Shown piece after piece: positions 1,710 through 58,359 of a stretch of 64,000 nt of DNA; positions within the stretch are counted from its first letter, which is position 1; every line of letters starts with the position of its first letter. The stretch is taken from assembly GCA_964035545.1 (NCBI GenBank), contig OZ037772.1, forward strand, positions 496,001 through 560,000. The letters are read 5' to 3'. This DNA comes from Bugula neritina. Taxonomy: Eukaryota > Animalia > Bryozoa. The position numbers and the translations under genes are program-made. The notes below the pieces were generated by a model. That model was not told the origin of the DNA. It saw only the letters and a list, made by a program, of their open reading frames with translations, and did no database searches.

Positions 1710-4700
1710 GAAAGATCACTATGACATCACAGATCCCACAACACTACCAGTAGCTCAGCATGGAGACCCCTTAGAATACAAGTCTCCACCCAAACCTGCA
1801 CCCATTCCCTGCGATGTGTGTAAAGGTGGAACACAAGCTGCTGTGTTTTGTCTTGAGAGTCAAAAAAAGTTGTGTCAGCAGCATCAAGAAGTGAGTCTTT
1901 CTTATATAATTTCTCAAGATTAGTTACTAAACCAGTTCTGGTTTGTATGTAGAATATTATTGAAAAGAAATGTTGAGCCTGTGTGACTTTTTATACTAAA
2001 CACACAGTTTCACAGTGCAGTGAGTCAACTATGACAGACTTGTTGGTGAAAATACAACCAACTAAACTGTTGACCTTTATTATACAGAATCACAGGGAGC
2101 TGATGGGAGATAGACATCAGTTTATTGACATTGAGGTCTACAGAGCTTCTCCCCAAAGATATACTATCACTGAATGTGAACATCATAAAGAGGAACAGCT
2201 GACAGAAGTGTGTTCCAAGTGTCACCAGATATTCTGTATGAGATGTGATATGAGGACTGGCTGTAAGGATAAGACAGGTATTTACTTGCTGTTTCTATTT
2301 CTGTAGAAAGAAACTGGGAAATATTACAAGAACCTGTTTATTATTTTATTATTAAAGTGAGTTATGCAACAGTAAAAGAGGAAGTCAGTTTGTCAGCATT
2401 AGGGTTTGTGTGAGACAGAAGTGGATAGTGCAGGAGTTGATATTCTCACTGTTATGTTGAATATTTAGTATATTTCATCCTTCAAGTGTCTGTTTCCTTG
2501 ATAAGATGGTATAGGCATAGCTTTAACTCAGTGGTGTCTCACCTTCTTCATACCATCCTCCTTTTTATGATTATTTTCTATTAAGTTTTCCGCCTTTTTG
2601 ATAAAATTGTAATTTCATTTATAAAGAAAATCTGGGACAGGTTGTTTTCCTAATAATTCATTGAATGTAGAAAAAAGCAGCTAGAGTAGAGTGAATATTA
2701 GACACATGGATGTAGAAGTAAACTTAGATTGTAGAGTGTAATGTGGATAAATAAATGAACTACATAAAATGAAGGAGTTATAATTATACATATTCATGTA
2801 ACCTGGAACACAAGGCAAGAGCTCAAAAAGCTGGTAACAAACTCTGTGAAATTTTAGAAATGAAAACCCCTAAAAAACTCAAATTTCCTGTGAAGGGGAA
2901 ATTCCCCAAGGTTGAGAGCCACTGCTTTAATTTTTTCAACTATTTCATTCCAAGTGCAGTGATTAATGAGCTAACCTCTGACATCTTTCTAGTCCAAGTT
3001 CAACTGTCTATAGTTATTACATAGTATGTGTGTAGTGATACATCATCAACCTGTAGGTACAAGTAGCAGGTGTAGAATAAGTACAATATCACATCTATAA
3101 TAATGTTTTTATAAATAGTGTGATTTTATGTATACAGAGGAGACAGTAGCATCCCATGACTTGGCATCTTTGAGTGATTTGTCTTGTGAGTTACGAGAAA
3201 GTCTGACTGGTGGAATAGAGACTCTGTCTGAGAAAGTTGCAAAGTTGAATGACATCTCAAAGGATGCCTGGAAAGAACTGAGTAAAATAGAAGATGAAGT
3301 GAAGAAGATGGTTGCCAGAGTAAACGCTGTAGCTGACGCTCAGGTATGCTGACATGGTGATGCCATGTAATATTATTTCTGTTTGTCTGAAATTGGAATT
3401 TGCATTTGGTCTTTGAGTTGTAATCAGAAATGAATTTCATTTGCCACTAGAATTAACTGGCCATTAAAGTATTATCATTCTGTGTACAAGTAGCAGTAGT
3501 CATTCATCACATGTTACTCAGTGCAGAGGAACCTGTCAATACAGATGACTCACTCATCCTTCTGCAACTGTCAATCACTCACACACAGAGGTTGGCTGGG
3601 TGAGTGATTGACAGGTGTCAGGAGGAGGAGACTAGTCACGTGATGTACTAGCTCTCTGCTGTGTATAGAGTGTCACGTGACTGAGTCATTGTCCACTCAG
3701 TGGGTGATCTGTCACTTTCATTTCCAGTGTAGAGGTTGTGAGGTACAGATGTGGTTACACTGTGTTACTATTTATTAGATAGAAAAGATTAGAAAGAGAG
3801 CTACAAACCTGAGGCTAGAAATATATGGATATTTGAAGAGCTGCACACAGATAGTGGATAATTATAGAATAGAGCTGGCCTTGAGTAAGACAATGGGCAG
3901 ACAGTCTCTGCTGGACACAGTACAACATGCAGTTGATAAGTTCAATGATGCAGGGATTGTGAGAGACTACAAAGAGCTGAGTGAGAAGGTGGAAAAGGCG
4001 TCAGATATTGGTGTAATAGAGAAGTGTGTACTTCCAGACAGCATCTTGTTACCAACATGTAGGTGGAGTCTATAAATAGTAACACTAACTATAAATAACT
4101 TTCTGCTTGTAATCATGTGAGTTGTTTTCACTGAATATTTGAATAGTAGAATAAGTAGATAGAGTTTATTTATTAGAGAATTGAGTTTTGTTCTACTCTC
4201 ACATTATGAGACATTTCTGCAGTGTTTCAGAGTTTATGGTGTATAAGTGAGCTGCTAAACTGTGTTATGCTGACTACCTGCTGTCAGTATTAACAAGATA
4301 TTCTCACTTAGACCTGTGCATCACGTAGCAACTTGTAGTAACTACAGACTGCTTGTATTTAAAACATTTTTTTATTTCAAGTTTGAAAAGCTGTTCCCAC
4401 CTCCTCAGGTGATGAGATTCTCAAGTTATAGAATTGTTATTTTGTTGTTGCAGACAGTGAAGACAGTCTGGGACTGAAGCTGCTGCAGCCACCATCTTCT
4501 CTCCAGTCTGATGGACTTCCTGTACGTGACTGGTGTGACACAGTAAACATCTCAGCTGATGGACATCTCATGTGTCGGACACTAGAAGGTGTAGAAGTAA
4601 TAAATAGAGACACTCTGGATACTATCAGCTCAGTGAAACGCACCAACACTACAGGGTGGGGGGAGATAATCCAACCTGAAGGGGTGATGGTTGGCATCTG

Positions 4701-6274
4701 GTATAACAAGAAGGAGAAAACAGCTGAAGTCTCACTTCTTGATCCGAACTCCTTTGAGAAGACTCGCTCCCTCTACAAGCAGCCATTAGGTGTACCTGCT
4801 TACTATAGAATAGCTCAGCACGACTCACTGCTCTGTATTGTAGACAGGAGTGAGAAACAGCTGGTAGTCTGTAATCTAGTTGACAATAAAATACAGAAGT
4901 TCCCACTTCCTGAGATGGAGAACCCTCTACCTGTATGCATCCTCCCAGACTCATCTCTCCTCATTGGAGACCTCACTGCAGATGGTAAAGTGAGAAGATA
5001 TAAAGTGGAGAACACAACTCTCTCTCTAATGTGGGATTTTCCTCACATCTCACTACCATCTGGTATTTCCTTTGATCCAACATCTGAACTGATTCACATC
5101 TGTACAGGGAGAGGACCTCTCCTCATCCTCTCACTTGAAGGTAAATACTCTGTTTATTATAGTAAGTTTAGTTATTTTATATATAATTATGTTGTAGTAA
5201 ATAATATATTTTAATAATTAACAGTAAACAACTTCCACTCATAAGATATATTATGATATTGTTAGTATTTATCAAGTCACTGATATTATTTTTAGCTAAA
5301 AGTTATGTAATAAAGACTGTAACATGCTGATAGTAGATGTTATATTCTTCATCACATGACTTGTAGCTAATAATAATATTATTGAATAATACTGCCTCCC
5401 TACAATAAGTTTATTTCCAGCTGCAGTAACATGCAGGATGTAAGCACAGGTAAAAGTGTATATTATATTGTATAGGTTTAAGGTGTACTCTGTGTAGTGT
5501 GCAGTGAGCTCTTAGTAAACTCTCTATTCAGTCTTCCTTTCCAAGGGTTCACCTGGTAGTGTAGAGGATAGGGACTCCACACTGCTGAGTGAGTTGGTGC
5601 TGCAAGGGGTTTAAAACCACCTATCAGCATGTCTAGTTAGTATACTATGCAAGTGTTTTACAGTAATTTTAGAGGTGCTCAGTCTAACAACTGTACAGAC
5701 TGCCAGCTACACATGAGTTATGAGTTGTAGTTTGACTTCAGTCTAGTGCTGCTATTGTTTTGGTCATCAGATAATTTAAATGTTAATAATTTGATACTTT
5801 TTGACTGCCATTACTGAGACTATGTAATTTGATGATGGCTGGTAGAGCAGTGTTTGCTGGTGGGACTCAGGTGGCTGTGGTTGGTTCTTGTCAAGTATTT
5901 AATATGTGATAATGTTGGAGTAGCTGCAGTATTATTAGAAGTAGACACGTGGGTGTGTTCTTGCTCAGAGCCACAGGCTAAGTTTATGGGTCAAGGTCAA
6001 TATTGTTGTATAACGAGACACTGTTTTCTATTTGAGTATTTACTTCATGCATGTAACCTGCTTAGTTGCATCTTTAAAGGCAGTCTGTCTGTTTCTCTCA
6101 ATACACACCAACTGATACAATATGATGCTATTATTTACAGGTCAACTGGTGCTTACTGTTCCCAGAGAAAGTCTTGGTGTTAGTAGCTTGGTGTTGGATA
6201 TTGCTGTGTATAACAGAGACACAGTGTTTTTAGCATGTGTAGATGGTCTGAGGAGATACACAATAAAATACTAA
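1710..6274 (+). CDS. TRIM-like (B-box, B-box, coiled coil, NHL-like beta-propeller) gene, copy 1; RING exon expected upstream of the window. Exons 1710-1890, 2088-2277, 3138-3343, 3779-4058, 4454-5140, 6141-6274
   Basis: GT-AG junctions in phase; CDVC..AAVFC..LCQQH and CEHH..CSKC..CMRC B-boxes; helical linker; propeller-like repeats (PVCILPDSSLLIGD, PSGISFDP); TAA at 6272-6274, AATAAA near 6452; no internal stops. Confidence 0.85.
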
Positions 6275-6999
6275 ACTTATCAGCTACAGTCTACTAATAA
6301 TCAGCTCAGTGAGGTACTGAGAGATAAATTGGATAATATTTGTCATCAACATAATTATATTCATTACAATTCATCAATACACACACTCTGTATTTATAGT
6401 TGGATATGAGATGTTTTACTGTATCAAATATATGTTGCTATTTTACCATCTAATAAAGTTTATTTGTTAGTGAAAACATAGTCTGTTTTCATGCCTCATT
6501 AGCTTTAGTTCAAGTTGAGTTTGGTTAGTAAAAATAATCTATACTGGAGCAGTAACTGTAAATGACTTGTTTGTGGGAGAATTTATTCACTGAATTGACA
6601 TGCAGGTGCAAGTACCTCCAACATGACTAAGTAAATTTATTCCAACCATTCATAATAATATACATTCCATTGCTGTGTACAACAGCATTGAGTAGCCAAT
6701 CAAATTGTTTCTTGTCACGCAATCAGGAATCTGATAAATAATATATAAGGCAATCAACTAGATATAAACACTGTATTACTCTACACATGAGCTGTCTATG
6801 ATACAGCTGTTTTGTAAACTGTGTGTAATTTGATGAGTTTAGTTCAATTGGTTGCAGTTTAATTATGACATGTTCCCCATTCACCTGGTAGAAATACCTT
6901 GTGTGCACAGACAAGTTGTAATGACTAACAGAAACTTTTTCAGTAGGTTCCAGTTCATCTTGAATATAATAGTACAGCTTGTTGTCATTTGGTCTCCAT

Positions 7000-7422
7000 A
7001 GTATTGATGGTACACTACCTTGTTTGGCCTTAATATTATAGATGGTATATTACCTTGTTTGGCCTCAATAGTATTGTTGGTAGACTACCTTGTTTAGCCT
7101 CACTAGTATTGATGGTACACTACCTTGTCTGGCCTTAATATTATAGATGGTACATTACCTTGTTTGGCCTCAATAGTGTTGATGGTACACTACCTTGTTT
7201 GGCCTCAATAGTATTGGTGGTAGACTACCTTGTTTGGCCTCAATAGTATTGATGGTATACTACCTTGTTTAGCCTCAATAGTGTTGATGGTAGACTACCT
7301 TGTTTGGCCTCAATAGTATTGATGGTATACTACTTTGTTTGGCCCTAATAGTATAGATGGTACACTACCTTGTTTGGCCCTAATAGTATAGATGGTACAC
7401 TACCTTGTTTGGCCTCAATAGT
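7000..7422. repeat. 35-bp minisatellite (gatggtacactaccttgtttggcctcaatagtatt), about 12 units
   Basis: Direct tandem units visible. Confidence 0.93.
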
Positions 7423-9149
7423 CTTGCTAACAGCACAACTTACAAGATTCAACTAATTTAACTTGTTGAGATTAACATGAATATAATACATATGAAATGT
7501 GAAAATAGCATTAAAAGTCAAGCAAGGAATTCACATGTTGACACAATTATATACTTTCACTTGAAGGTAAGCTTGATGAACCAATATGAACTGTTCACAG
7601 AGTTTACTGTGTAGGATTTGCACCTAGAATATTTAGTTACATCAGAGCTAAGTGAAAAATCTAACAGTTGATTTATTCTGTTGAGTATTGATCTTATTAC
7701 CCAACTTCACCCTTTTTACTGTAGAGTTTGTTGATGTAAGTTCACTTAATTAAACTATTCTCATGCAAGGGGTGGGGGTGGAATATTATTGTGAATTTAT
7801 GCTTTACTTGTTATTATAGGGTCTATTTAGGCAAAGCTATTTCACCAGGTTTGTGATTGCTAACACTTTATTCTATTTATTTCAAGATACTAATAAAACT
7901 GTACAACTATCAAAAACACGTTCCATAATAAAAGAGAGAATATACAAGACTTTACAATAACAATTCCAAGTGCTCTCTGCCTGCTAGTCAAATAGACTAG
8001 GGCCCACTACAAGTATTCAGCTCCGCCTACTACTAATTATTAACAGTCACTGATTGGCCATCACGATGGCACCATCACACTAGTTGATCTGCATGCTGCA
8101 AAATGCATCATGTCCTCTAGTTAAAGTGTGTGCACGGAGTTATCATTTCGATATAATAACATAATATACAAAATCTCTGCAATATGCCACCTGGGATATC
8201 TGTATGATAAACTTAACCAATCAACTAGCAGCATCTTCACTATTCAATGAAATTATCAAACTATATTATTTAACTGTAACATTATCCTAGTGAAACCTCT
8301 CAACTGTTCCTCCTATTCACTAATCATCAAATTATTCTCCTCTACCAAATCAATACATTGTGCAGACTCCATATTTAATCTCCTCTACATACAGTTTATA
8401 TTCCAGCTATCAGAGTCATGATTCTACATCACATGAATGTTCTCTACTTTAACAAGAGAATAGCCAACTATAAAAACCTGCTATAGCACACAATATAGCA
8501 ACCTGTTATAACATGACACACAGTACATCAATATTCATTCACTACACAAAATATCTCAATACACATAACAACTGGAGCTGCTGAAGTTCAATGGCTTATA
8601 CAAGTTGAATTGAACAAAACACTACGTTGTTCTTCAGCATATCAACTAGTATGAGTAGTGTGGAGAGATCTTTTATATATATAAAAACTTGTGTTTGAAG
8701 GAAATATTAAATTATATTATTCCTCTTAGCATCACATGTAGCATGAATATCAACTTATAGTTAGTGAGTTACTAGAAGTTTCTTTGTAACGGAAACCAGT
8801 CCGGGTTCCCCTGCAGTTCCATCTCAACGAGTCTGGCCTGAGCTGAGGTCACCGCATGATGACATCATTCACTAGGTTCTTCTTGGTGTCTGGAAATTTT
8901 CTACCAGTTACTCCAGTGACTGAAAATGAAGTACTAATACCAGTGACTCGGTCTCAAACTTACTTACTGAGTCATTGTGATTATTAGTTGATGACTTAAT
9001 GTTTTAGTGAAGTTATAGTTATAGTTAACTTATAGTCCTACTGACACTAATAGCTAATGTGCCATTCAGTCTCATCTTCATTCTCAGTAATTGTAATACT
9101 GATATTAAGACTAACTAACGCCTAATGCTAAGTTCAACTACTAATTATT

Positions 9150-9243
9150 ACACTACTAGTACTACTACTACTACTAGAAGTAGTGGTGGTGGCGGTAGCG
9201 GTAGCAGTAGTAATGGGAGTACTAGTATTATTAGTAGTAGTAT

Positions 9244-9285
<42 letters not shown>

Positions 9286-9323
9286 TAGTACTAGTAGTAG
9301 TAGTAGTAGTATTAGTAGTAGTA
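9150..9323. repeat. (CTA)n/(TAG)n microsatellite
   Basis: Trinucleotide runs; shorter in copy 2 (about 48060-48177). Confidence 0.9.
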
Positions 9324-9454
9324 TGACAGCGCTTCTTCATAGGATCTGCCAGTCACCCAGTAGTTGTTGTCACTAAACTATGTAAAATATATAGAGGTTA
9401 AAAGGTCACTAAACTATGTGAAATATATAGAGGTCAAGAGGTCACCAGACTATC

Positions 9455-9640
9455 ACCAACTTTCCATGTACCGATCTCAGATCGATCTCAGCGAGATCGA
9501 TCCATGGAAAGACGCCAAAGATCGATCTCCGTCGATCTGAGCTGGTCGGTCTGTGGAGCTCGAACTCAGATCGATCTCATGTCAATAAGACCATGGAAAG
9601 ACACCAGATCGACCTGAGAAGTAGAAAAAGACTGCGTGCT
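9455..9640. mobile_element. One-ended MITE-like remnant (tttccatg/catggaaa and gatcgatc palindromes), probably PIF/Harbinger-related
   Basis: Palindromic motifs resembling the TIR of the MITE at 37218-37973; no partner TIR found; counterpart at about 48273-48450. Confidence 0.45.
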
Positions 9641-9709
9641 ACAATGTTGTCTGCTAATAAAAATGATAACTTATTGATAATTACTAAGCAAAGTATTAAA
9701 TAATCATGA

Positions 9710-10246
9710 TGTCACAAATTCTGAGTGTACATATACCTATAAATAGACTTACCGGGTTTTTCCTAATGATTATACACGAATGTTCATAAATGTTCTAGAC
9801 TGATCAAAGAGATGGGTCATTGTTCATTGTTATTGTTTTCATTAGTCATGTTAACTACTGCCCAGCAATGTAAACAAGGTGTTGCGCAATAATTGCGAAT
9901 AACCATGGAAATTCCAATGTTTTGTTTTGTTTTGATTTTCTATAAATAGTATTGGCATGTGGGGAATGTTTTCTACTAGAATATTCTATACTGGAATGCT
10001 TGAGAATGTTCTAGAGTGTTTTGTTTACTATAAATACTGAGGCAGTTGTGTTTACGAATCAGTTCATTCTCGCAGTTCATTCTTGGAGTTCATTTTTATA
10101 AGTTCATCTGTGCATGTCTTACTAGAGAAATAAAGTCTACTCTATTTACTCTCAACTGGATTAGCAAGCTGTATGCTACTTGTCTCTATACTTCTGACTA
10201 CCAGACTTTTCGAACTCGTCACACTGCTACCAACAGTTTTGTGACA
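9710..10246 (+). repeat. 5' LTR
   Basis: TG...CA termini with 9-bp inverted repeat; three TATAAATA boxes; AATAAA near 10128. Confidence 0.96.
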
Positions 10247-10248
10247 AT

Positions 10249-10265
10249 TGGGGGCTGCTCCGGGA
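10249..10265 (+). promoter_or_regulatory. Primer-binding site, tRNA-Pro type
   Basis: TGGGGGCTGCTCCGGGA 2 nt after the LTR; matches the tRNA-Pro PBS TGGGGGCTCGTCCGGGA except a CG/GC swap. Confidence 0.8.
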
Positions 10266-10342
10266 AGTCTCAGTCGCACACAGGGAAGTTATTAGTTACA
10301 ACGTGAGTATACACAGGATTAATTAACAGTTGTTGAGACATT

Positions 10343-13063
10343 ATGGCGTTGTTGGAGAGAGTGACACAGATGGGTAAAGACCTTGGGTTGGTGGAGGACA
10401 AGCTCATAGCTTTTGTTGAAAAGAACCTACCCATTGTTGCTGCACAAGAAGAAAAAGAAAAGGACCGAGAGGAACGTAGATTAGAGCGTGAGGCAGAAAA
10501 GATCAGGCAAGAGAATGAGAAAGCCTTAATGGAGATGAAGATAAAAGCTGATCAGGAGGCAATGGCATTCAAGGTTAAAGCTGATCAGGAGGCAATGGCA
10601 CTCAAGGTTAAAGCTGACCAGGAGGCAGAAGAGAGAAGACAACGACATGAATTAGATATGGAAAAGCTGAAAGCTGACACAAGTTTGGAGCACTCAAGAC
10701 ATGAGAGCACCAGGTTAGAAATAGCTAACAAACCAAAACCAAAGATACCATTCTTTGATGAGAAGGTAGACGAAATGGATAGCTATTTAGAGCGGTTCGA
10801 GTGGGTTGCTGAAGGATGTAACTGGGACAAGGGAGATTGGTCCTACCATCTCAGTCAGTACCTAAGGGGTACAGCAACAGAAGCTTACATCCGGTTATCA
10901 CCTACCGACCGTAGAGATTATAAAAAAGTCAAAGAAGCCTTGTTGGAGCGCTTTAACTTGACTCAAGAGGGCTACAGAAAAAAGCTCAGAGAGGCAGAAG
11001 CTTACGAGGATGAAACTCCTGCCCAACTATTCACTAGGATAGAAACTTATGTGCACAAGTGGGTAGAACTTTCAGGGGGCATGGACATAGCCAAACTAGT
11101 GGCGACTGAACAATTTATATCATCATGCCCAGACGACCTAGCTGTGCATTTAAAGCAAAGTTCCTACAACAGCAGTGAGGATATGTGTGATGCAGCGTCA
11201 CTGTTCTTGCACGCTCGTGGAAGGAAACTAGCAAAGACAAAGAAAACTAATACAAAAAGGATGGAAAACGCGCCTGCCGATAGCATGGATGCTGAACAAG
11301 GAAGTAAAAGCGATGGTGCATGCTTCATCTGCAAAGATAAGTCGCACATTGCTCGTAACTGCCCACGGCAAGGGAAGAAGCACTGTTCACATTGCAAGAT
11401 GAACAACCACAATACTTCCGACTGCAGAAAGTATGGTGGGAGGTCAGTGCATGCTGCTGCTGCAATAGCGACTACTCAGAATAAGACTGTGGTCACAGAT
11501 CCAGGAATCTCATCTAAAGTGGAAGAACCTACGGAAATCACAGTTAATGGTAAAAAGTTTATCAACGCTGCTGTCTGCAAGAATGGACCTAAATTCAAAG
11601 ATGGGGGCACAGCGATATTTGATGCGGAAGTTAATGGCCAACGAGCTACTGTAATGCGCGACACTGGCTGTGGTTGCATTGTAGTCAATGCAAAGTATGT
11701 GCAACCTCAACACTTAACTGGAGAATCAGTTTATCTGAATATGGCTGATGCAAGTGTTAGGGAGGCTCAGTGGGCACTTATCTCAGTACGCTCACCCTTT
11801 TACAATGGTGTCGTCAAAGCTGCAGTAATGGACAAGACGATTTGTGACCTGCTTATTGGGAATGTGGATGGAGCGAGATCAGCTGACCAGCCGCTGGAAA
11901 ACTGGAAGGACTGCGCCGTAACCACAAGAGCTCAAGCTGTCAAGCAGAAGTCAGGAGACAATCCACTGATGATTTCTTCAAATGCTAACCCATTAAGTAT
12001 AGGGAAAGATGAAATAGCCAGACTGCAGAGGGATGACCCCACATTGGAGCGTTTCTTCGATGCAAAAGAAGTGAAGGAGAAAAAGGGATGCACCACTAGG
12101 TTTGTGGTGAGGAATAAGATCCTGTACCGTGAGTACACCGACTCGAAGTCTGTCAGTGTAAAACCTGTTAAACAACTCATGGTACCCAGTTCACTGAGGA
12201 AGGAAGTTCTACAGAAAGCTCATGACTGCATAATGAGCGGACACCTAGGAGTAAAGAAAACCACTGATAGAGTGCTTTCCAACTTCTTCTGGCCAGGACT
12301 AAACGGAGATGTCGTACGTTTCTGTCAATCATGTGACATTTGCCAGAAGACGGTGAAAAAAGGCTCAGTCATGAAAGTTCCAGTACAGGAAACTCCACTA
12401 ATTGACACCCCATTCAAGAGATGTGCAATAGACCTAGTCGGACCAATTAACCCTCCAAGTGAGAAAGGACACCGCTACATCCTAACTTTAGTTGACTATG
12501 CTACAAGATATCCTGAAGCTACACCATTGAAGAACATTGACTCAGCTACTGTAGCTGAAGCGCTGCTTGACATATACAGTCGTGTTGGGATACCAGAGGA
12601 GGTGATAAGCGATCAAGGAACTCAATTCATCTCGGACTACATGAAAGAGTTTACCAGATTACTTGACATGCGGCAACTTCCTACCTCACCGTACCATGCA
12701 ATGGCCAATGGACTTGTGGAAAAGTTCAACGGAACCCTCAAGAGTATGTTAAAAAAGTTGTGTGCTAAAGAGCCAAGACAGTGGCATCGGTTCATCAATG
12801 CGGCTCTATTTGCATATAGAGAAGTCCCACAGGAATCAACAGGCTTCGCCCCATTCGAGTTACTCTATGGAAGAACTGTGCGTGGACCAATGTACATCCT
12901 GCGACAACTTTGGACAAAAGAAGACACTGCCGATGAAGTCAAGACCTGCTATCAACATGTTTTTGAATTGAGAGAGCGTTTAGATGACATGATGGAAATG
13001 GCACTAGCTTCGCTAAAAGACAGTCAAAAAAAGATACAAACACTATTTTGTCAAGAAAGCTAA
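10343..13063 (+). CDS. Gag-protease-integrase polyprotein (906 aa); integrase C-terminus continues after a frameshift in an A7 run near 13026-13032
   Basis: SCAN-like capsid (ETPAQLFTR..QFISSCPDDL), CCHC knuckles, protease MRDTG, integrase H..H..C..C, IDLVGP, SDQG, NGLVEKFN; WQGPF (GPY/F) in the next frame. Confidence 0.92.
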   Translation: MALLERVTQMGKDLGLVEDKLIAFVEKNLPIVAAQEEKEKDREERRLEREAEKIRQENEKALMEMKIKADQEAMAFKVKADQEAMALKVKADQEAEERRQRHELDMEKLKADTSLEHSRHESTRLEIANKPKPKIPFFDEKVDEMDSYLERFEWVAEGCNWDKGDWSYHLSQYLRGTATEAYIRLSPTDRRDYKKVKEALLERFNLTQEGYRKKLREAEAYEDETPAQLFTRIETYVHKWVELSGGMDIAKLVATEQFISSCPDDLAVHLKQSSYNSSEDMCDAASLFLHARGRKLAKTKKTNTKRMENAPADSMDAEQGSKSDGACFICKDKSHIARNCPRQGKKHCSHCKMNNHNTSDCRKYGGRSVHAAAAIATTQNKTVVTDPGISSKVEEPTEITVNGKKFINAAVCKNGPKFKDGGTAIFDAEVNGQRATVMRDTGCGCIVVNAKYVQPQHLTGESVYLNMADASVREAQWALISVRSPFYNGVVKAAVMDKTICDLLIGNVDGARSADQPLENWKDCAVTTRAQAVKQKSGDNPLMISSNANPLSIGKDEIARLQRDDPTLERFFDAKEVKEKKGCTTRFVVRNKILYREYTDSKSVSVKPVKQLMVPSSLRKEVLQKAHDCIMSGHLGVKKTTDRVLSNFFWPGLNGDVVRFCQSCDICQKTVKKGSVMKVPVQETPLIDTPFKRCAIDLVGPINPPSEKGHRYILTLVDYATRYPEATPLKNIDSATVAEALLDIYSRVGIPEEVISDQGTQFISDYMKEFTRLLDMRQLPTSPYHAMANGLVEKFNGTLKSMLKKLCAKEPRQWHRFINAALFAYREVPQESTGFAPFELLYGRTVRGPMYILRQLWTKEDTADEVKTCYQHVFELRERLDDMMEMALASLKDSQKKIQTLFCQES

Positions 13064-13376
13064 GCAGAGAGACTTCAGACCTGGTGACAAAGTGCTCATT
13101 CTTCTACCTACGGATGGAAATAAATTGCTGATGCATTGGCAAGGACCATTCAATATTGAGGAGAAAGTCAGACTGAATGACTACATTATCAACATTAGAG
13201 GCAAGAGGAGAACATACCATGCCAACATGCTGAAGAAGTATTTTGAGCGGGAGACGCCTACCGACTCTATGACTGTTGGAGCTGTGATGACTCTAGATGC
13301 TGCTGGTGCTGGAATTATTGATCACAATAAGGAAAGAGAAGAATGCCAAGATGATTTGTTGGACCTGTACAGTAAG

Positions 13377-13497
13377 AAACAGCAGAGTGATGAGATGGGC
13401 TATGTATTTACAGGACTTCAGAATCAAGGTGGAGTCAATCCAAGAAAAGGACAATGTTGGAGCTGATTATCTAAGCCGAATTGACTCAGAATTTTAA
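13377..13497 (+). pseudogene. Residual RNase H C-terminus of pol
   Basis: NSRVMRWAMYLQDFRIKVESIQEKDNVGADYLSR matches the Gypsy RNase H end motif R..RW..LQ.F...N..AD.LSR. Confidence 0.8.
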
Positions 13498-13531
13498 GTA
13501 GTTAGGAGAAATGATCAAGATAATTTCTCTT

Positions 13532-13542
13532 AGAATGGGGGG
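13532..13542 (+). promoter_or_regulatory. Polypurine tract
   Basis: agaatgggggg immediately before the 3' LTR. Confidence 0.75.
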
Positions 13543-13543
13543 T

Positions 13544-14080
13544 TGTCACAAATTCTGAGTGTACATATACCTATAAATAGACTTACCGGGTTTTTCCTAA
13601 TGATTATACACGAATGTTCATAAATGTTCTAGACTGATCAAAGAGATGGGTCATTGTTCATTGTTATTGTTTTCATTAGTCATGTTAACTACTGCCCAGC
13701 AATGTAAACAAGGTGTTGCGCAATAATTGCGAATAACCATGGAAATTCCAATGTTTTGTTTTGTTTTGATTTTCTATAAATAGTATTGGCATGTGGGGAA
13801 TGTTTTCTACTAGAATATTCTATACTGGAATGCTTGAGAATGTTCTAGAGTGTTTTGTTTACTATAAATACTGAGGCAGTTGTGTTTACGAATCAGTTCA
13901 TTCTCGCAGTTCATTCTTGGAGTTCATTTTTATAAGTTCATCTGTGCATGTCTTACTAGAGAAATAAAGTCTACTCTATTTACTCTCAACTGGATTAGCA
14001 AGCTGTATGCTACTTGTCTCTATACTTCTGACTACCAGACTTTTCGAACTCGTCACACTGCTACCGACAGTTTTGTGACA
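13544..14080 (+). repeat. 3' LTR
   Basis: Same length as the 5' LTR; one difference seen (accaacag vs accgacag). Confidence 0.96.
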
Positions 14081-14279
14081 CATGATAGCCGCCTTTTCAG
14101 ATGCCAAAACTTTGACTTTCAGTACAATGATTAAGAAAACTCAATTATATGCAGAAGAAGGTAAAAAAAAATGGGAGAATTTAAATTGAGTTCAAATGAC
14201 TATATTAAAACTCAGTTTCATAAGCTATTTCCTTTGTAATTTTAAGCCTAACAGTCCTGTAAGTTTATTAATAATCTGC

Positions 14280-14478
14280 AAGGGCCACACCCACTCCCGA
14301 AAGGGCCACACCCACTCCAGAAAGGGCCACACCCACTCCAGAAAGGGTCACACCCACTCCAGAAAGGGTCACACCCACTCCAGAAATGGCCACACCCACT
14401 CCGGAAAGAGCCACACCCACTCTAGAAAGGCCACACCTACTACAGAAAGGGCCACACCCACTTCAGAAATGGCCACAT
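14280..14478. repeat. 21-bp minisatellite (ccagaaagggccacacccact)
   Basis: Tandem units; three more units in copy 2. Confidence 0.92.
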
Positions 14479-14769
14479 TAGAGGGAATTCATAGTTTATC
14501 AACATAAACATAGTCTGTGGTAAATATTAGGTCTGTGCTAAACCCACTTGCTTTCTGTAAATAACACCAGACAAAATGAAGAATGACTCATACCTCAGCC
14601 TTAGGTTGCCCCTGGATCTGCACAAAGTAGGCTGGTATTCTGTGCCCCCACCATAGCTGTCTGGAGATACACCAGCCCTTGGAGTTCCTCAGCCATTTGT
14701 ACCAAGTGACTGTGTGATAGTCTGGTATGATCTTTAGCTTGCCTGATTCTACTACCTGCATTATACATT

Positions 14770-15040
14770 CTATACTATAGATATACTATGCTATAGATAT
14801 ACTATGCTATAGATATACTATACTATAGATATACTATGCTATAGATATACTATGCTATAGATATACTATGCTATAGATATACTATGCTATAGACATACTA
14901 TACAGTACTAATATATATACTACACAGTACCAATATATTATATACTATACACAGTACTAATATATATACTATACAGTACTAATATATTATATACTATACA
15001 GTACTAATATATATACTACACAGTACTAATATATATATAC
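14770..15040. repeat. 16-bp minisatellite (atatactatgctatag) grading into an acagtactaatat repeat
   Basis: Tandem units; counterpart 49275-49495. Confidence 0.88.
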
Positions 15041-15267
15041 TAATTGTGAAACAGCCAAAATAGGAAAATAAGACCTTGTAGTGCAGTGAGCAAGGCAAGT
15101 TCAAGCCATACAACTTTAACATGTTGCATTACAGAAGAAAGACCTGCTTCATTTTGGTAAACAACTATAAGTAATATTGGGAGTTACGCCACCTATGAGT
15201 AACAACATGGAGTTGTGTTTCTTTTCATAAACGCAAAAAGGTAAAAATTACTTGTTTCTTCAAGGTA

Positions 15268-15390
15268 GCATAACTCCTAATTGTGTGACATATTTCTAAG
15301 TTGAAATGGTTTTTCCTTGCATTATATAATATATAATGCAAGGAAAAACCATATCAACTTAGAAATATGTCACACAATTAGGAGTTATGC
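15268..15390. repeat. 123-bp near-perfect palindrome
   Basis: gcataactcc...tgcattatata-a-tatataatgca...ggagttatgc, one arm mismatch. Confidence 0.9.
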
Positions 15391-15613
15391 CGCCTCTTTG
15401 TCAAAAACACGGAATACAAGATTCACACACCAAACAGTACTCAGTGCTATATGAATAGACTCCAATATAGTTCTCCCTCCGTATCTCAGTAAGCTGAGAG
15501 ACCTGACACCTCAATTCATGACACAGTAGAATTCTTACCTTAGCAGAATACCATATTTAACACACGGATCTGTTAAATTATTTTGTCCCTACACACAAAA
15601 GGCTTTGAAAACA

Positions 15614-16170
15614 CAGGACAACAGGTTATGAATATACAGGACAACGGGCTATGAATATACAGGACAACAGGCTATGAATATACCGGACAACAGGCTATGA
15701 ATATACAGGACAACAGGCTATGAATATACAGGACAACAGGCTATAAATATACAGGACAACAGGCTATGAATATACAGGACAACAGGCTATGAATATACAG
15801 GACAACAGGCTATGGATATACAGGACAATAGGCTATGAATATACAGGACAACGGGCTATGAATATACAGGACAACGGGCTATGAATATACAGGACAACAG
15901 GCTATGAATATACAAGACAACAGGCTATGAATATACAGGACAACAGGCTATGAATATACAGGACAACAGGCTATGAATATACAGGACAACAGGCTATGAA
16001 TATACAGGACAACAGGCTATGAACATACAGGACAACAGGCTATGAATATACAGGACAACAGGCTATGAATATACAGGACAACAGGCTATGAACATACAGG
16101 ACAACAGGCTATGAATATACAGGACAACAGGCTATGAATATACAGGACAACAGGCTATGAATATACAGGA
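15614..16170. repeat. 23-bp minisatellite (caggacaacaggctatgaatata), about 24 units
   Basis: Tandem units. Confidence 0.95.
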
Positions 16171-16470
16171 AACAGAGCACCTGTCCCAAACTCCATCTCC
16201 ACAAAGTCGTCAGCCACAATAGGTATTCTCCTGTCAGCAAAAAGATGTCTCACAAATTTCCCGTGTAAGTGTTTGTATCGGCCGTCTTCAGGGTGGACAG
16301 CCACGGCAGTGTCACCTACAATAGTTACCAGACTTTATAGTCTCTCACAGTATTGAGTATTGATATACAATTATATATTTACTGAGTGTTTACCAGATCC
16401 AACTTCACAGTCACTATACTCAGAGTACACAACTCCCAGTAAGTTAGTATCAAGCTAATTAACCACTAAC

Positions 16471-16860
16471 CCCTTATTCACACTTACCGTATCGTATCGT
16501 AACAGCAAATATCAGCCATTTTTACAAATGTCTGAGCTTCCTGTACGGTGTTGCGGTACGGTAGGATCAAGCACTGCTTGATTCAAATAAGTTGCGGCGG
16601 ACTCCTATTGGACAGAAAAACTTTTGCGTTAATTCATTGGATATAAATGTCTAATGTAGCGTCATAGATCGTACCTAATAGCGGACTTTGAAAACTTCAA
16701 CCCGCACCTTAAACCAAAATGGAATAATAGAATTAAAAAATTTAGGCTATCTCAAGTTCTCCACTACTGCTCCTAAGTGAGAATAGTTAGAGAAATCTAC
16801 TCGAGTTACTTCAATTGGCAGCAAGAGTCAGCCATTATTACGTTGCTAAGCAACAAAGCT
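16471..16860. mobile_element. Probable Harbinger-type MITE remnant in a ValRS intron (also near 51361-51760)
   Basis: CpG-rich island starting ccc(t)tattcacacttaccgt with inverted accgta/tacggt motifs; second TIR not found. Confidence 0.35.
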
Positions 16861-18826: not shown

Positions 18827-18950
18827 GGGGAGCAGCTGTGGTCTAGGGGTTAGAGCGTTTGTCTAGTGAACACGAAGCCATTGTTTGACAAAGGCCATTG
18901 GTGACGTTAGAAAGAGCATCTAGTCATAATTGCTCCTGTGCCACATCTAA
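18827..18950 (+). mobile_element. tRNA-derived SINE remnant (also near 53845-53970)
   Basis: ggggagcagctgtggtctaggggttagagcg resembles a tRNA 5' half with A box; B box missing. Confidence 0.45.
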
Positions 18951-37973: not shown

Positions 37974-38254
37974 TGTATGTGGAGTTTGAGTCACCAGCAA
38001 TAAACTATTCAGTGATTACAATGGAAACAATACAGCCTTTGTTAGAGAGTTAAAGCTGTGAGCTCAGCATGTTGTAGCTGGCTATCATGTATACCAGTGT
38101 TATTAACTGCCTTTGTTTAACATTATTTTTCCTTTTATTTTGTATGGTTTGTTGTTAATGGTTAAGTCTTTGATTTGGAAACCTTCAAATAGCGTGAAAT
38201 ATTATGCTAAGAGTATGTGTATCTTTCACAGCACTTCCTTATTATATAACCAAG

Positions 38255-41200
38255 ATGGCAGAATCCAGAGTTGTGAAAAAGAGACTAAACAATTCATATC
38301 GCTGTGGGTACTGCTCGCAGTACTTCAACAAACTTGAAGATCCCAGAACTCTGCCCTGTCTGCATGTGTACTGCATGAGATGTTTGAAGACTGACATAGG
38401 TGGTAGGAAGGATCATATCAGATGTGCTTATTGTAGGTGAGTTACAGCACATAACACAATATATCATGTCATAGGCTTGCATATGATTTTCTCACTATCA
38501 TCTAGGAGTTGTCTGATCTGTGTCTATGAAAAGCAAACAATACTGTATATTCTATGTGAACTCTGGTTACTAACTTGTGGAGTGTGTGGATATCTTTTCA
38601 TCAGGTAGAGAAAATAACTGTTATGTAGATTACATCATCAGCTGTCCTCTCTTGTTGAATTGTGGTACTGTTGGATGTCATGGGATTGGGGTTGTCTCCT
38701 CATTATATTACTTTGTTCTCATACAGTACAAGACTTGTTAGAGCAGTCATTCCTAACCTTTTTCATACCATTCCCACTTTCATACATGTTTACTATTAAG
38801 TCCCCTCCCTTTTGTCAATCGGAAATTTTTATGACGGACATAATGATAATATAGATTACTATGCAATATTTTTTCTCTTACATTTGAATATAATATAATT
38901 ATTTCTGATAATTATATTATGCATGTGTAAAACACAGAGCAGTTCAATTATTAATATTATGGCTGCAGCTGATGACATTGTGTCAGCTTGCTTTCAAACC
39001 TCCCACCCCAACCCCTAAACCCCAACCCCAATATTGTAATTAAAACACATTCATGTAGAAGTAGACTGAGATGGCAGAATTGGTTAAATAGATAAGCTAA
39101 GATGAAGGCTTATAGATATACATGTACATGTAACTTGCAAGAGCTCAAAAGTCTTCAACAAACTGCTTGAAATTTTTGAAATCAAAATCTCAGCTCCCCC
39201 TAAAAAGCCCAAATTCCCTCTTAGAAGATTCTCCCAGCTTGGGAACCGCTGTGTTGGATTGACTTGTGTTTACTATCTCCTTTCCTGTGATTAGAAACAT
39301 GTATGATGTTGTCATGGCAACACAGTTGCTGTGGCACAAAGTACAGTTTACTAGTATGTAGTGATTGTGTAGTGAGAGTGGAGTGTCTGGTTATTGTCCA
39401 TGGTTATGTGTAATCTGTAAGGAGTAGAATTATATTATTTTAATATAATGTTGAGAGAGGTACTTTTATAATGGCAGTTTGCTAAATAGCTTTAGTTCTA
39501 ATGCGATAGACTCATAACTCTGGAGTCTAGCAACTGCTACTATTACCACTAGCTGTTCAAAATTCGGGCTGCCAAAGCATAATAGCCATTGACAAGGCCA
39601 AGCAGTCACTGGGAAATTATTTGACTAAAGAGCAGGTCTTATGACAATTAGTAGTCAGTCCCTTAGACAGGAAACAGTGATTCTGTGACCTATTTAGTTA
39701 AATCCAGAGCTGAACTTTTGATTGACTATTAGATAGCCATCACAATTTTATTTGGTACAATATAATATTATGGGGTGTCAATCAGTGTCTAATATAATCT
39801 GTGAATTGAGTGTCTACTTCTTCTACCACCAGTCAGTTGTATTAAGTGTTACTCTGTATTGAGTCATGAATAGTGTTGAGGATTTGGGCCTATATTATGC
39901 CACCCCCCCTCTCTGACTTAGACTGAGACCCAACCTGCTGCACATACATAGCAGTACTACACTGAAGATAGTTAACATGTGTATGTGTCATCCTACTAGT
40001 AATGGATTACTAAGTACAAGTTATCCTATGACTCACTCTTCTTACGCTAGCTGCACGAGATAGGCAACACTCACACGTGACACGAACTCACAGTGCACTA
40101 GCTCTTGACACATTGCCAAGGATGATGAAATGACAGTTTCGCGCCACTCCTAGCAGTTAGAGTGGCAGGGAATAGTTGTAGTATGTTGTAGTATTGGCTC
40201 CTCAGAATTCACCCCTCAGTAATTAGTTGCATTGCACAAATTTGCAACAGTAGTGAATAATTATTGACAATATGGCCTCCACTCAGTAGTTAACTAGTAA
40301 TTTGTCTTGTCATTTTACAATACAAGTTACAGTTGAGTCTATTTGTTGAGTAGCAGTTCTTTGTCATGAGTGACTCTTCCAGCATATTAGTACATAATAT
40401 AGTCAAGTGTGTTTGTGTGATAGCCTGTGGTCTATATAATGAATGTGTGTTGATGAGTGATGAGTATTTATTTGAGTATTTGTCAAGGACATAGCTGTGT
40501 GTGTGGATGGAGTATTTCATTACTTGAGATATACTAAACACAGCTAACACAAGTAACATACTGATTGCTATATATTGTAGGAAAGATCACTATGACATCA
40601 CGGATCCCACAACACTACCAGTAGCTCAGCATGGAGACCCGCTAGAATACAAGTCTCCACCCAAACCTGCACCCATTCCCTGCGATGTGTGTAAAGGTGG
40701 AACAGAAGCTGCTGTGTTCTGTGTCGACAGTCAAAAAAAGTTGTGTCAGCAGCATCAAGAAGTGAGTCTTCCTTATGTCATTTCTCAAGATTAGTTACTA
40801 AACCAGTTCTGGATTGTGTGTAGAATATTATTGAAAAAAAATGTTGAGTCTGTGTGACTTTTTATACTAAACACACAGTTTCACAGTGCAGTGAGTCAAC
40901 TATGACAGACTTGTTGGTGAAAATACAACCAACTAAATTGTTGACCTTTATTATACAGAATCACAGAGAGCTGATGGGAGATAGACATCAGTTTATTGAC
41001 ATTGAGGTCTACAGAGCTTCTCCCCAAAGATATACTATAACTGAATGTGAACATCATAAACAGGAACAGCTGACAGAAGTGTGTTCCAAGTGTCACCAGA
41101 TATTCTGTATGAGATGTGATATGAGGACTGGCTGTAAGGATAAGACAGGTATTTACTTGCTGTTTCTATTTCTGTAGAATAAATCTGAGAAATATTACAA

Positions 41201-44200
41201 GAACCTGTTATTTATTATTTTATTATTAAAGTGAGTTATGTAACAGTAAAAGAGGAAGTAAGTTTGTCAGCATTAAGGTTTGTGTGAGACAGAAGTGGAT
41301 AGTGCAGGAGTTTATATTCTCACTGTTATGTTGAATATTTAGTGTATTTCATCCTTCAAGTGTTTGCTCCCTTGATAAGATGGTATAGGCATAGCTTTAA
41401 CTCAGTGGTGTCCCACCTTCTTCATACCATCCCCTTTTTATAAATATTTTCTAATAAGTTTCGGCCTCTTTGATAAAATTGTAATTTCATTTATAAAGAA
41501 AATCTTGGACAGGTTGTTTTCCTAATAATTCATTGAGTGTAGAAAAAGGCCAGTGTGTTTGACATGGACCAGTGTCTGCCACAACTTCAGTTCAGCTTTG
41601 AAAGCATTGATGCTGGTATTAAAAGCAATGAGTTGATGATTATACTCATTCATTTTAGGTTCAGAGTTTTTAGTACAGCAAATATAACTACTAGGTACGC
41701 AGTAAATAGTTTGTGGCGATCAGTTCCACTGACTGCAACAACTTCATGTTAGTTTTTACTTTCAATAAACCTTTTAGCCTCCATTCGTAGTAGGAGGGGT
41801 AGCAGCTAAAGTAGAGTGAATATTAGACACATGGATGTAGAAGTAAACTTAGATTGTAGAGTGTAATGTGGATAAATAAATGAACTACATAAAATGAAGG
41901 AGTTATAATTATACATATTCATGTAACCTGGAACACAAGGCAAGAGCTCAAAAAGCTGGTAACAAACTCTGTGAAATTTTAGAAATGAAAACCCCTAAAA
42001 AACTCAAATTTCCTGTGAAGGGGAAATTCCCCAAGGTTGAGAGCCACTGCTTTAATTTTTTTCAACTATTTCATTCCAAGTGCAGTGAATATCAATGACA
42101 TCTTTCTAGTCCAAGTCCAACTGTCTATAGTTATTACATAGTATGTGTGTAGTGATACATCATCAACCTGTAGTTACAGGTAGTAGGTGTAGAATAAGTA
42201 CAATGTCATATCTATAATAATGCTTTTATGAATAGTGTGATTTTATGTATACAGAGGAGACAGTAGCATCCCATGACTTGGCATCTTTGAGTGATTTGTC
42301 TTGTGAGTTACGAGAAAGTCTGACTGGTGGAATAGAGACTCTGTCTGAGAAAGTTGCAGAGTTGAATGACATCTCAAAGGATGCCTGGAAAGAATTGAGT
42401 AAAATAGAAGATGAAGTGAAGAAGATGGTTGCCAGAGTAAACGCTGTAGCTGACGCTCAGGTATGCTGACATGGTGATGTCATCTAATGTATTTCTGTTT
42501 GTCTGAAATTGGGTTTTGCATTTGGTTTTTGAGTTGTAATCAGGAATGAATTTCATTTGCCACTAGAATTAACTGGCCATTAAAGTATTACCATTCTGTG
42601 TACAAGTAGCAGTAGTCATTCATCACATGTCACTCAGTGCAGAGGAACCTGTCAATACAGGTGACTCACTCATCCTTCTGCAACTGTCAATCTCTCACAC
42701 AGAGAGGTTGGCTGTCTGAGTGATTGACAGGTGTCAGGAGGAGGAGACTAGTCGCGTGATGCACCAGCTCTCTGCTGTGTATAGAGTGTCACGTGACTGA
42801 GTCATTGTCCACTCAGTGGGTGATCTGTCACTTTCATTTCAAGTGCAGAGGTTGTGAGGTGCAGATGTGGTTACACTGTGTTACTATTTATTAGATAGAA
42901 AAGATTAGAAAGAGAGCTACAAACCTGAGGCTAGAAATATATGGATATTTAAAGAGCTGCACACAAATAGTGGATAATTATAGAATAGAGCTGGCCTTGA
43001 GTAAGACAATGGGCAGACAGTCTCTGCTGGACACAGTACAACATGCAGTTGATAAGTTCAATGATGCAGGGATTGTGAGAGACTACAAAGAGATGAGTGA
43101 GAAGATGGAAAAGGCTACAGATATTGGTGTAATAGAGAAGTGTGTACTTCCAGACAGCATCTTGGTACCAACATGTAGGTGGAGTCTATAAATAGTAACA
43201 CTAACTATAAATAACTTTCTGCTTGTAATCATGTGAGTTGCCTTCATTGAATATTTAAATAGTAGAATAAGTAGATAGAGTTTATTTATTAGAGAATTGA
43301 GTTTTGTTCTGCTCTCACATTACGAGACATTCCTGCAGTGTTTCAGAGTTTATGATGTATAAGTGAGCTGCTAAACTGTGTTATGCTGACTGCCTGCTGT
43401 CAGTATTAACAAGATATTCTCACTTAGACCTGTGCATCACGTAGCAACTTGTAGTAACTACAGACTGCTTGTATTTAAAACATCTTTTCATTTTAGGTTT
43501 GAAAAGCTGTTCCCACCTCCTCAGGTGATGAGATTCTCAAGTTATAGAATTGTTATTTTGTTGTTGCAGACAGTGAAGACAGTCTGGGACTGAAGCTGCT
43601 GCAGCCACCAGCTTCTCTACAGTCTGATGGACTTCCTGTACGTGACTGGTGTATCTCAGTAAACATCTCAGCTGATGGACATTTTATGTGTCGGACACTA
43701 GAAGGTGTAGAAGTAAGAAATAGAGAGACTCTGGATACTACCAGCTCAGTGAAGGACACCAACACTACAGTGTGGGGGGAGATAATCCAACCTGAAGGGG
43801 TGATGGTTGGCAGCTGGTATAACAGAGAGGAGAAAACAGTTGAAGTCTCACTTCTTGATCCGAACTCCTCTAAGAAGACTCGCTCTCTCTACAAGCATTC
43901 AGTAGATAGACTCTTCCTTAATTACTATAGAATAGCTCAACACGACTCACTGCTCTGTATTGTAGACAGGAGAGAGAAACAGCTGGTAGTCTGTAATCTA
44001 GTTGACAATAAAATACAGAAGTTCCCACTTCCTGAGATGAAGGACCCTCGTCCTGTATGCATCCTCCCAGACTCAACTCTCCTCATAGGAGACTACACTC
44101 TAGATGGTAAAGCGAGAAGATATAAAGTGGAGAACACAACTCTCACTCTAATGTGGGAGTTTCCTCGCATCTCACGGCCATCTGGTATTTCCTTTGATCC

Positions 44201-45403
44201 AACATCTGAACTGATTCACATCTGTACAGGGAGAGGACCTCTCCTCATCCTCTCACTTGAAGGTAAATACTCTGTTTATTATAGTAAGTTTAGTTATTTT
44301 ATATATAATTATGTTGTAGTATATAATGTATTTTAATAATCAACAGTAAACAACTTCCACTCATAAGATATATTATGATATTGTTAGTATTTATCAACTC
44401 ACTGATGTTATTTTTAGCTAAAATTTATGTAATAAAGAGTGTAACATGCTGATAATAGATGTTATATTCTTCATCACATGACTTGTAGCTAATAATAATA
44501 TTAGTGAATAATACTGCCTCCCTACAATAAGTTTATTTCCAGCTGCAGTAACATGCAGGATGTAAGCACAGGTAAAAGTGTATATTATATTGTATAGGTT
44601 TAAGGTGTACTCTGTGTAGTGTGCAGTGAGCTCTTAGTAAACTCTCTATTCAGTCTTCCTTTCCAAGGGTTCACCTGGTAGTGTAGAGGATAGGGACTCC
44701 ACACTGCTGAGTGAGTTGGTGCTGTGAGGGGTTCAAACCCACCTATCAGCGTGTCTAGTTAGTATACTATGCAAGTGTTTTACGGTAATTTTAGAGGTGC
44801 TCAGTCTAACAACTGTACAGACTGCCAGCTACACATGAGTTATGAGTTGTAGTTTGGCTTCAGTCTAGTGCTGCTATTGTTTTGGTCATCAGATAATTTA
44901 AATATAAATAATTTGATACTTTTTGACTGCCATTACTGAGACTATTGTAATTTGATGATGGCTGGTAGAGCAGTGTTTGCTGGTGGGACTCAGGTGGCTG
45001 CGGTTGGTTCTTGTCAAGTATTTAATATGTGATAATGTTGGAGTAGCTGCAGTATTATTAGAAGTAGACATGTGGGTGTGTTCTCGCTCAGAGCCACAGG
45101 CTAAGTTTGTGGGTCAAGGTCAATACAGTTGTATAATGAGATACTATTTTCTGCTGTTTGAGTATTTACTTCATGCATGTAACCTGCTTAGTTCCATCTT
45201 TAAAGGCAGTCTGTCTGTTTCTCTCAATACACACCAACTGCTACAATATGATGCTATTATTTACAGGTCAACTGGTGCTTACTGTTCCCAGAGAAAGTCT
45301 TGGTGTGAGTGACTGGGTGTTGGACATCGCTGTGTATAACAGAGACACAGTGTTTCTAGCATGTAGTTATGATGGTCTGAGGAGATACACAATAAAATAC
45401 TAA
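38255..45403 (+). CDS. Complete TRIM-like E3 ligase (RING, B-box, B-box, coiled coil, NHL-like beta-propeller), 622 aa, copy 2. Exons 38255-38436, 40581-40761, 40959-41148, 42255-42460, 42895-43174, 43570-44262, 45267-45403
   Basis: C3HC4 RING CGYC..PRTLPCLHVYCMRC..CAYC; exon lengths sum to 1869 nt in frame; GT-AG junctions; AATAAA near 45582. Confidence 0.88.

Positions 45404-58066: not shown

Positions 58067-58159
<93 letters not shown>

Positions 58160-58317: not shown

Positions 58318-58359
<42 letters not shown>

Follow-up and report, generated by a model that had tools for sequence, protein, structure and literature searches.

Here we report that two TRIM-type genes of Bugula neritina, copies A and B, combine a constant N-terminal half with a hypervariable C-terminal beta-propeller. 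They lie in a 64,000-nt stretch of contig OZ037772.1, hereafter C8 (C8:496001-560000; this whole stretch is called the window, and coordinates without prefix are positions in it), which is a spliced eukaryotic locus in a 216-Mb genome. At a probability of roughly 0.72, we interpret the two genes as belonging to a large germline family of TRIM-type E3 ligases in which the effector half stays constant, while one face of the propeller has been diversified, at about 27 residues, as a recognition repertoire. The domain order is RING, two B-box-like zinc modules, a predicted coiled coil and a six-bladed NHL-type beta-propeller, encoded by a RING exon and by exons 1 to 6, as listed below.

C8:495290-495469: RING exon of copy A, outside the window, 710 nt left of the window
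1710..1890, forward strand: first B-box exon of copy A (exon 1), starting in phase 1, with a weak ANCHR-like B-box match
2088..2277, forward strand: second B-box exon of copy A (exon 2), Pfam zf-B_box E=9e-5, AG/GT splice sites
3138-3343 and 3779-4058, forward strand: coiled-coil exons of copy A (exons 3 and 4), with intron 3 between them
4454..5140, forward strand: propeller exon of copy A (exon 5), blades 1-5 of the NHL-type propeller, with 23 hypervariable codons in 10 patches
6141..6274, forward strand: last exon of copy A (exon 6), end of blade 5 and blade 6, with 4 hypervariable codons and the stop codon at 6272-6274
38255..38436, forward strand: RING exon of copy B, ATG at 38255, donor GTGAGT, phase matching the next exon
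40581-40761 and 40959-41148, forward strand: B-box exons of copy B
42255-42460 and 42895-43174, forward strand: coiled-coil exons of copy B
43570..44262, forward strand: propeller exon of copy B, 693 nt, 2 codons longer than that of copy A
45267..45403, forward strand: last exon of copy B, stop codon at 45401-45403

An earlier note, made from the letters of the window, had recognized these genes from the first B-box exon onwards. Because that exon starts in phase 1, an upstream coding exon was needed, and a scan for RING motifs located the one of copy B. This exon carries a C3HC4 motif and matches Pfam zf-RING_UBOX with 31.5 bits (cut-off 25.2) and zf-C3HC4 with 23.1 bits (cut-off 21). The zf-B_box match of exon 2 reached 23.0 bits, slightly below the cut-off of 24.1, and the ANCHR-like match of exon 1 had an E value of 0.066; the Cys/His spacing is recognisable in both exons. 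Exons 3 and 4 are helical, with weak Pfam matches only to helical or coiled-coil families (E 0.005-0.1), and exons 5 and 6 gave no Pfam match on single sequences. As had been noted before, the frames of both copies are open; their splice sites are canonical. The architecture that had been proposed, RING, B-box, coiled coil and propeller, was supported by Pfam for the RING and by the predicted fold and profile matches for the propeller, with B-boxes and coiled coil as probable parts.

A protein-guided codon alignment of exon 5 between copies A and B reproduced exactly the earlier hand count of 34 replacement and 5 silent-only codons, together with a 2-codon in-frame indel (QPLGVPAY/HSVDRLFLNY). 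The count of 9 replacement and 10 silent codons for exons 1-4 was likewise recovered, and the SL/DW and V/SY changes described for the last exon are present. Using the Nei-Gojobori method, we obtained a nonsynonymous divergence (dN) of 0.080 and a synonymous divergence (dS) of 0.061 for exon 5, a ratio (omega) of 1.31, compared with omega values of 0.21 for exons 1-4 and 0.35 for exon 6. The proportion of replacement to silent changes differed between exon 5 and exons 1-4 (Fisher p=0.004), while an omega above 1 was not significant for exon 5 of this pair taken alone (p=0.5). Replacement divergence in exon 5 was 7.6%, twice the 3.6% found in the A/B introns (104/2875; p=8e-5). The flanking introns had been called nearly identical, but they are actually 3.0-4.6% divergent. 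Nor are the genes two young paralogs; they are adjacent, rather old (95-96% identical) members of a family with at least 94 copies. The underlying observation of the earlier note is confirmed, and its interpretation as a recognition system under diversifying selection is partly supported.

A genome search with the propeller exon returned 99 near-full matches, 94 of them without stops. The first 4.7 Mb of C8 (C8:0-4.7 Mb) hold 64 of these (60 open), tens of kb apart and mostly in one orientation; more clusters were found on C3, C2, C1 and C4, and weak matches of 22-27% identity at C8:6.6-7.2 Mb. In 53 copies the RING exon encodes one and the same protein sequence (100% identity); copies on C3 are among them, with propeller exons of only 79-83% identity. 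Diversity was analysed in one assembly, in 31 copies over exons 3-6 and in 22 whole genes (20 copies for the B-box figures). The reading frame was intact in 28 of the 31 over exons 3-6 and in 20 of the 22 over exons 1-6, always with AG/GT splice sites. When the propeller was compared with 1.84 billion representative proteins, only 26 matches appeared, all of them metagenome fragments or distant bacterial NHL/YVTN propellers. Damaged members are rare. In L049 (= L023, C8:1642690-1649690), the 4.6 kb upstream of exon 5 contain neither exons 1-3 nor the 5' part of exon 4, and L030 (C8:1028356-1032042) has one internal stop in exons 3-6. In addition, propeller-exon fragments of about 63 amino acids (query residues 30-92, about 70% identical) recur between the array members, at C8:456614-456802, 263239-263424, 739519-739716, 2726007-2726192 and 3732591-3732776; they may be relics or donor cassettes for conversion.

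Across the family, the ratio of nonsynonymous to synonymous diversity (piN/piS) was 0.11 in the B-box exons (20 copies). Over the 28 intact copies, nucleotide diversity was 0.017 in the coiled-coil exons (piN/piS 0.51), 0.033-0.044 in the introns, 0.063 in exon 5 (piN/piS 1.30, confidence interval 0.90-2.0) and 0.076 in exon 6 (piN/piS 0.69). The replacement excess was confined to the propeller exons, as the earlier note had proposed. Within these exons it falls on about 27 hypervariable codons, each of which takes up to 9 amino acids. These codons are often spaced as i and i+2 and form 12 patches, two per 44-residue blade, and the remaining propeller codons are constrained (ratio about 0.55-0.64). 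The hypervariable sites are enriched 8-fold in Trp and 3.8-fold in Arg, and all 28 copies have a unique signature. CpG hypermutability was considered as the source of these Arg- and Trp-rich sites and was rejected: CpG transitions make up 13% of events, and a single site holds up to 9 amino acids.

We then counted the minimum number of mutation events per site without a tree, which gives a lower bound that recombination cannot inflate. This number was 0.21-0.26 in introns and 0.29 at synonymous sites of exon 5. For replacement events, it was 2.17 in the 27 hypervariable codons, 9 times the intron rate, and 0.19 in the other propeller codons. With a Bonferroni correction for all 439 tested codons, eleven remained individually above the intron rate. 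The transition/transversion ratio was 1.0 in exon 5 versus 1.6-2.0 in introns, and 28% of the variable columns had more than two states in exon 5, compared with 7% in intron 5. Our own GY94-type codon model, run on a FastTree tree, put the global omega of the propeller exons at 1.65 and that of the coiled-coil exons at 0.46. When the replacement rate (beta) was allowed to exceed the silent rate (alpha), the fit improved by 220.6 (twice the log-likelihood difference) for the propeller and by 1.0 for the coiled-coil control, with 16 and 0 sites, respectively, at p<0.05. The empirical-Bayes posteriors of the grid model were too liberal (80 sites above 0.9, and 20 in the control exons) and were left unused. 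Together, these comparisons of sequences support the view that the propeller has evolved under positive selection and the coiled-coil control has not.

The position of the hypervariable codons follows the predicted fold. A profile of the family matched the PknD-derived Pizza protein (6e-23), PknD (7e-9), Brat (1e-3) and a C. elegans RBCC-NHL protein (1e-3), and language-model features also indicate NHL clusters. AlphaFold2, applied to the exon-5 alignment, produced an all-beta model with 19 strands in groups of four, one group per blade (predicted local distance difference test score, pLDDT, 88.6; predicted template modelling score, pTM, 0.85), for which Foldseek returned propeller matches that include the NHL domains of Thin, Mei-P26 and TRIM2. 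The ten patches of exon 5 occupy every second loop without exception: the series starts ahead of strand 1 and runs through loops 2-3, 4-5, 6-7 and onwards as far as 18-19, and the loops in between are conserved. Loops that alternate along a beta-meander share one face; in the model, this geometry places the hypervariable residues on a single face of the propeller, where the earlier note had expected them. The patch pattern continues by sequence in exon 6, from which we infer a sixth blade. If the motif PSGISFD is strand A, as we take it to be from NHL repeats, the variable loops would be D-A and B-C and would lie on the conventional top, ligand-binding face.

Next, we compared units of the array that are almost identical. 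Copy A and four copies 0.3-2.4 Mb away (C8:0.78, 1.48, 1.78 and 2.92 Mb) form such a group. These five units, and no others, also share a 100% identical ValRS (valyl-tRNA synthetase)-like fragment 9-13 kb downstream. Outside exons 5 and 6, the four sister copies differ at 3-14 positions per 6179 nt (0.05-0.23%). In exons 5 and 6 (822 nt), the differences rise to 8-34 among the four sisters and to 34-43 between copy A and each sister, although copy A differs from them at only 0-1 positions in exons 1-4 and 1-5 positions in the 1-kb intron 5. For copy A and copy L033, the excess in exons 5 and 6 gave p=2e-22. Furthermore, synonymous sites of exon 5 were also raised in near-identical pairs (proportion of synonymous differences, pS, 0.018-0.036; p=0.007 to 6e-6), and therefore point mutation followed by selection is not the whole story.

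In the six-copy group made up of these five and L003, 96 of the 118 alleles in exons 5 and 6 (about 80%) occur in other paralogs too, and the silent variants are common family alleles close to hypervariable codons. Exon 5 contains 62 informative sites, compared with 22 in the longer intron 5, and a minimum of 25 recombination events (Rm) within its 687 nt. The pairwise homoplasy index (PHI) test within exon 5 was not significant (p=0.74), and it yields no tract-length estimate because incompatibility has reached saturation at every distance (33% of site pairs). Copy L032 changes from A-like to divergent near exon 5. The earlier note had named conversion from an old paralog as a possible explanation of the excess. 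Conversion between paralogs does contribute, as the raised synonymous differences in exon 5 of near-identical pairs and the shared alleles indicate. The exon-5 alleles private to the six-copy group stand at about 16 replacement to 1 silent. The simplest reading of these data is recent segmental duplication, followed by short-patch conversion and point mutation, with changes at contact residues selected.

These results suggest how the array may have arisen. Units of tens of kb would duplicate in tandem, carrying the dead ValRS fragment along, and the two propeller exons would then diversify fast through point mutation and short-tract conversion among members of the array, with positive selection retaining the changes at contact residues. 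The effector half is held constant meanwhile, with a RING that is identical in 53 copies and B-boxes at an omega of 0.11. The D-A and B-C loops of each blade would hold the roughly 27 residues that are driven apart between copies, so that each gene would encode a different binding surface, rich in Trp and Arg. The proteins would be active E3 ligases, whose variable face would bind diverse non-self ligands (protein or RNA of viral, transposon or microbial origin) and mark them for restriction or signalling that depends on ubiquitin.

Other explanations account for part of the same data. If constraint on the C-terminal domain were relaxed, or the domain were decaying, in redundant duplicates, the replacement excess would be neutral drift. 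The A/B omega of exon 5, not significantly above 1, and a domain-wide piN/piS of about 1.1 agree with this idea, but it is contradicted by the integrity of the genes and by the distribution of the changes. Exon 5 is open in 94 of 99 copies and exons 3-6 are intact in 28 of 31, while the co-duplicated ValRS fragment, unlike the TRIM genes, does have stops. In addition, the non-hypervariable codons are constrained, the hypervariable ones lie 9-fold above the intron rate, and every blade has its variable sites in the same two loops. We regard relaxed constraint as very improbable. A directed process that diversifies the propeller exons only, either exon-targeted hypermutation or templated conversion from spliced cDNA or other paralogs, would explain why units 0.05-0.23% different elsewhere differ by 1-4% in exons 5 and 6, with 1-5 changes in the 1-kb intron between, and why exon-5 synonymous sites are raised 9-18-fold over non-coding DNA in near-identical pairs (p=0.007 and 6e-6). 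The family-wide density of synonymous events in exon 5 equals that of introns and counts against general hypermutation, and the private alleles of the near-identical group are overwhelmingly replacements. Most alleles are common to other copies, as expected of ordinary short-tract conversion followed by selection, and the introns are kept. To our knowledge, no mechanism of directed, exon-restricted diversification exists in animals, and we consider this process unlikely. If it were true and patches of exons 5 and 6 were converted in a directed manner, the array would be an animal germline diversity-generating system, and the roughly 20-fold larger difference in these exons, synonymous sites included, next to an untouched intron would be explained.

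A repertoire that is diversified but not immune is somewhat less improbable than a directed process, yet it too is probably not the answer. The genes could encode sequence-specific RNA regulators like canonical TRIM-NHL proteins, or allorecognition or symbiont-management factors. The propeller is of NHL type, the NHL domains of Brat and LIN-41 bind RNA with their top face, and the variable sites are enriched in Arg and Trp; moreover, the sequence is present in runs labelled as 'symbiont metagenome', which suggests that the host carries symbionts. However, allorecognition at the cell surface is an unlikely task for a cytosolic RING E3 ligase, and replacement at 9 times the neutral rate is more than endogenous RNA targets would be expected to cause. 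Between a non-immune and an immune role as such, no data point discriminates.

Several points weigh against a selected recognition repertoire, which we nevertheless prefer. We infer the E3 activity, the ligand and the immune role entirely, and only a few RNA-labelled runs contain part of the exon's words. For exons 5 and 6 together, piN/piS was 1.14 (confidence interval 0.80-1.65), which is not significantly above 1; of the earlier expectation that the propeller would exceed 1 across the family, the site-level signal of positive selection, absent from the coiled-coil control, stood, and the domain-wide excess was not significant. The hypervariable set was picked by entropy; the Bonferroni test nonetheless spans all codons. 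The tree-based tests ignore pervasive recombination and are hence inflated; the argument rests on the control exons and the tree-free counts. The sample covers 31 of at least 94 copies from a single assembly, in which paralogous and allelic variation are not separable. Finally, the one-face assignment derives from strand topology rather than coordinates, and the model comprises exon 5, with exon 6 outside it.

The two genes are embedded in a tandem segmental duplication, in which positions 1-22,922 match 38,966-60,250 at 92-98% identity (self-BLAST), with the copies about 39.1 kb apart. The main features of this locus are given below.

1..22922: repeat unit A, truncated by the left edge of the window, matching 38966-60250 in self-BLAST
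38966..60250: repeat unit B, tandem partner of unit A
17990..18214, reverse strand: ValRS-like class I tRNA-synthetase exon fragment, Pfam tRNA-synt_1 E=6e-17
about 52898-53119, reverse strand: second ValRS-like fragment, the twin in unit B
9710-14080: long terminal repeat (LTR) retroelement of unit A, with LTRs of 537 nt at 9710-10246 and 13544-14080 (536/537 identical, 99.8%)

In the genome search, the ValRS-like fragment occurred in at least 34 copies along C8:0.15-4.5 Mb, as a passenger carried by the repeat unit. Several of these carry TGA or TAG stops or a 5' truncation, in agreement with the earlier description of this neighbour as decayed. The LTR element is present only in unit A; the sister units are without it, and their spacing is 4,376 nt shorter at this place. 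Its 906-aa open reading frame (ORF) contains integrase zinc-binding and core domains and a SCAN-like gag domain, and no reverse-transcriptase domain was found in this ORF with Pfam. The 16-kb spacer between the units contains fragments of a collagen triple helix and of a fibrillar-collagen C-terminal domain (25197-25469 and 27347-27793, forward strand; weak Pfam matches). A 549-aa ORF with a reverse-transcriptase domain (30146-31795, reverse strand; RVT_1 E=4e-41) is flanked by tandem repeats of 17-nt period at 29573-29982 and 31946-33460. About 0.7 kb 3' of each TRIM stop codon lies a minisatellite of 35-nt period (6988-7426 and 45830-46339), which is kept as part of the repeat unit and differs in repeat number between copies A and B. 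At the right end of unit B we observed a very AT-rich degenerate tandem repeat (GC about 0.10) and an array of 26-nt period (58017-59480 and 61190-62659). A (TA)n simple repeat is present inside 1048-1109.

Fast-evolving antiviral TRIMs have been regarded as a vertebrate innovation based on B30.2, and TRIM-NHL proteins as the conserved housekeeping branch (PMC2533329). Our interpretation would mean that an invertebrate builds the same logic on an NHL propeller, with a constant E3-ligase module and a hypervariable binding face in about 94 genes. In the literature searched, hypervariable TRIM-NHL arrays had not been described before from sponges or any other invertebrates. The sister repeat units are natural experiments in which little apart from the contact residues has changed. 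The array may thus be a tractable system for studying both how germline recognition repertoires rise through duplication, micro-conversion and selection and what such intracellular receptors bind. It also offers a propeller scaffold that varies in nature at about 27 defined specificity positions.

Several known systems share parts of this pattern. In the major histocompatibility complex (MHC) and in the venom phospholipase A2 (PLA2) and conotoxin genes, exons diverge faster than introns, and the MHC combines patchwork micro-conversion with selection for diversity. The proteins are unrelated to those described here, and in Bugula it is the paralogs of a single array, rather than alleles or species, that show the effect. 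In the fungal HNWD family and the HET-E, -D and -R NOD-like receptors (NLRs), a few fixed positions in each WD40 blade, on the ligand-binding face, are under diversifying selection, and sequence is exchanged between members (PMC4986451). The hypervariable propeller face and the exchange of sequence among family members are common to both. However, the fungal effector is a NACHT/HET module instead of a TRIM half, the kingdom differs, and fungi shuffle repeats within and between genes, whereas here whole genes of a tandem array exchange short patches.

Among TRIM proteins, the canonical TRIM-NHL group (TRIM2/3/32/71, Brat, Mei-P26, LIN-41 and NCL-1; class VII, Marin's subfamily C) has a RING, B-box, coiled coil and six-bladed NHL propeller; the array genes share the RING and the propeller and probably the B-box and coiled coil. 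These are single-copy, slowly evolving 'group 1' TRIMs (PMC2533329, PMC3503706). The Bugula array, in contrast, is massively amplified (at least 94 copies) and hypervariable, with a propeller omega of 1.3-1.65; it does not show the slow evolution with one-to-one orthologues of group 1, and no filamin domain was seen in its genes. In their mode of evolution, the array genes resemble the class IV, B30.2-bearing TRIMs, the fish finTRIM/btr/hltr families and primate TRIM5alpha/TRIM22, which have hypervariable, positively selected recognition loops and for which virus sensing is the proposed driver (PMC3137616). Both join an effector half with a RING and, in Bugula probably, B-boxes and a coiled coil to a C-terminal recognition domain that carries hypervariable loops, and both have expanded into multigene families. 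The variable domain in Bugula is an NHL-type beta-propeller and not B30.2, its array, with about 60 genes in 4.7 Mb, has a much more regular layout and an invariant RING, and its sister units differ almost solely in the recognition exons.

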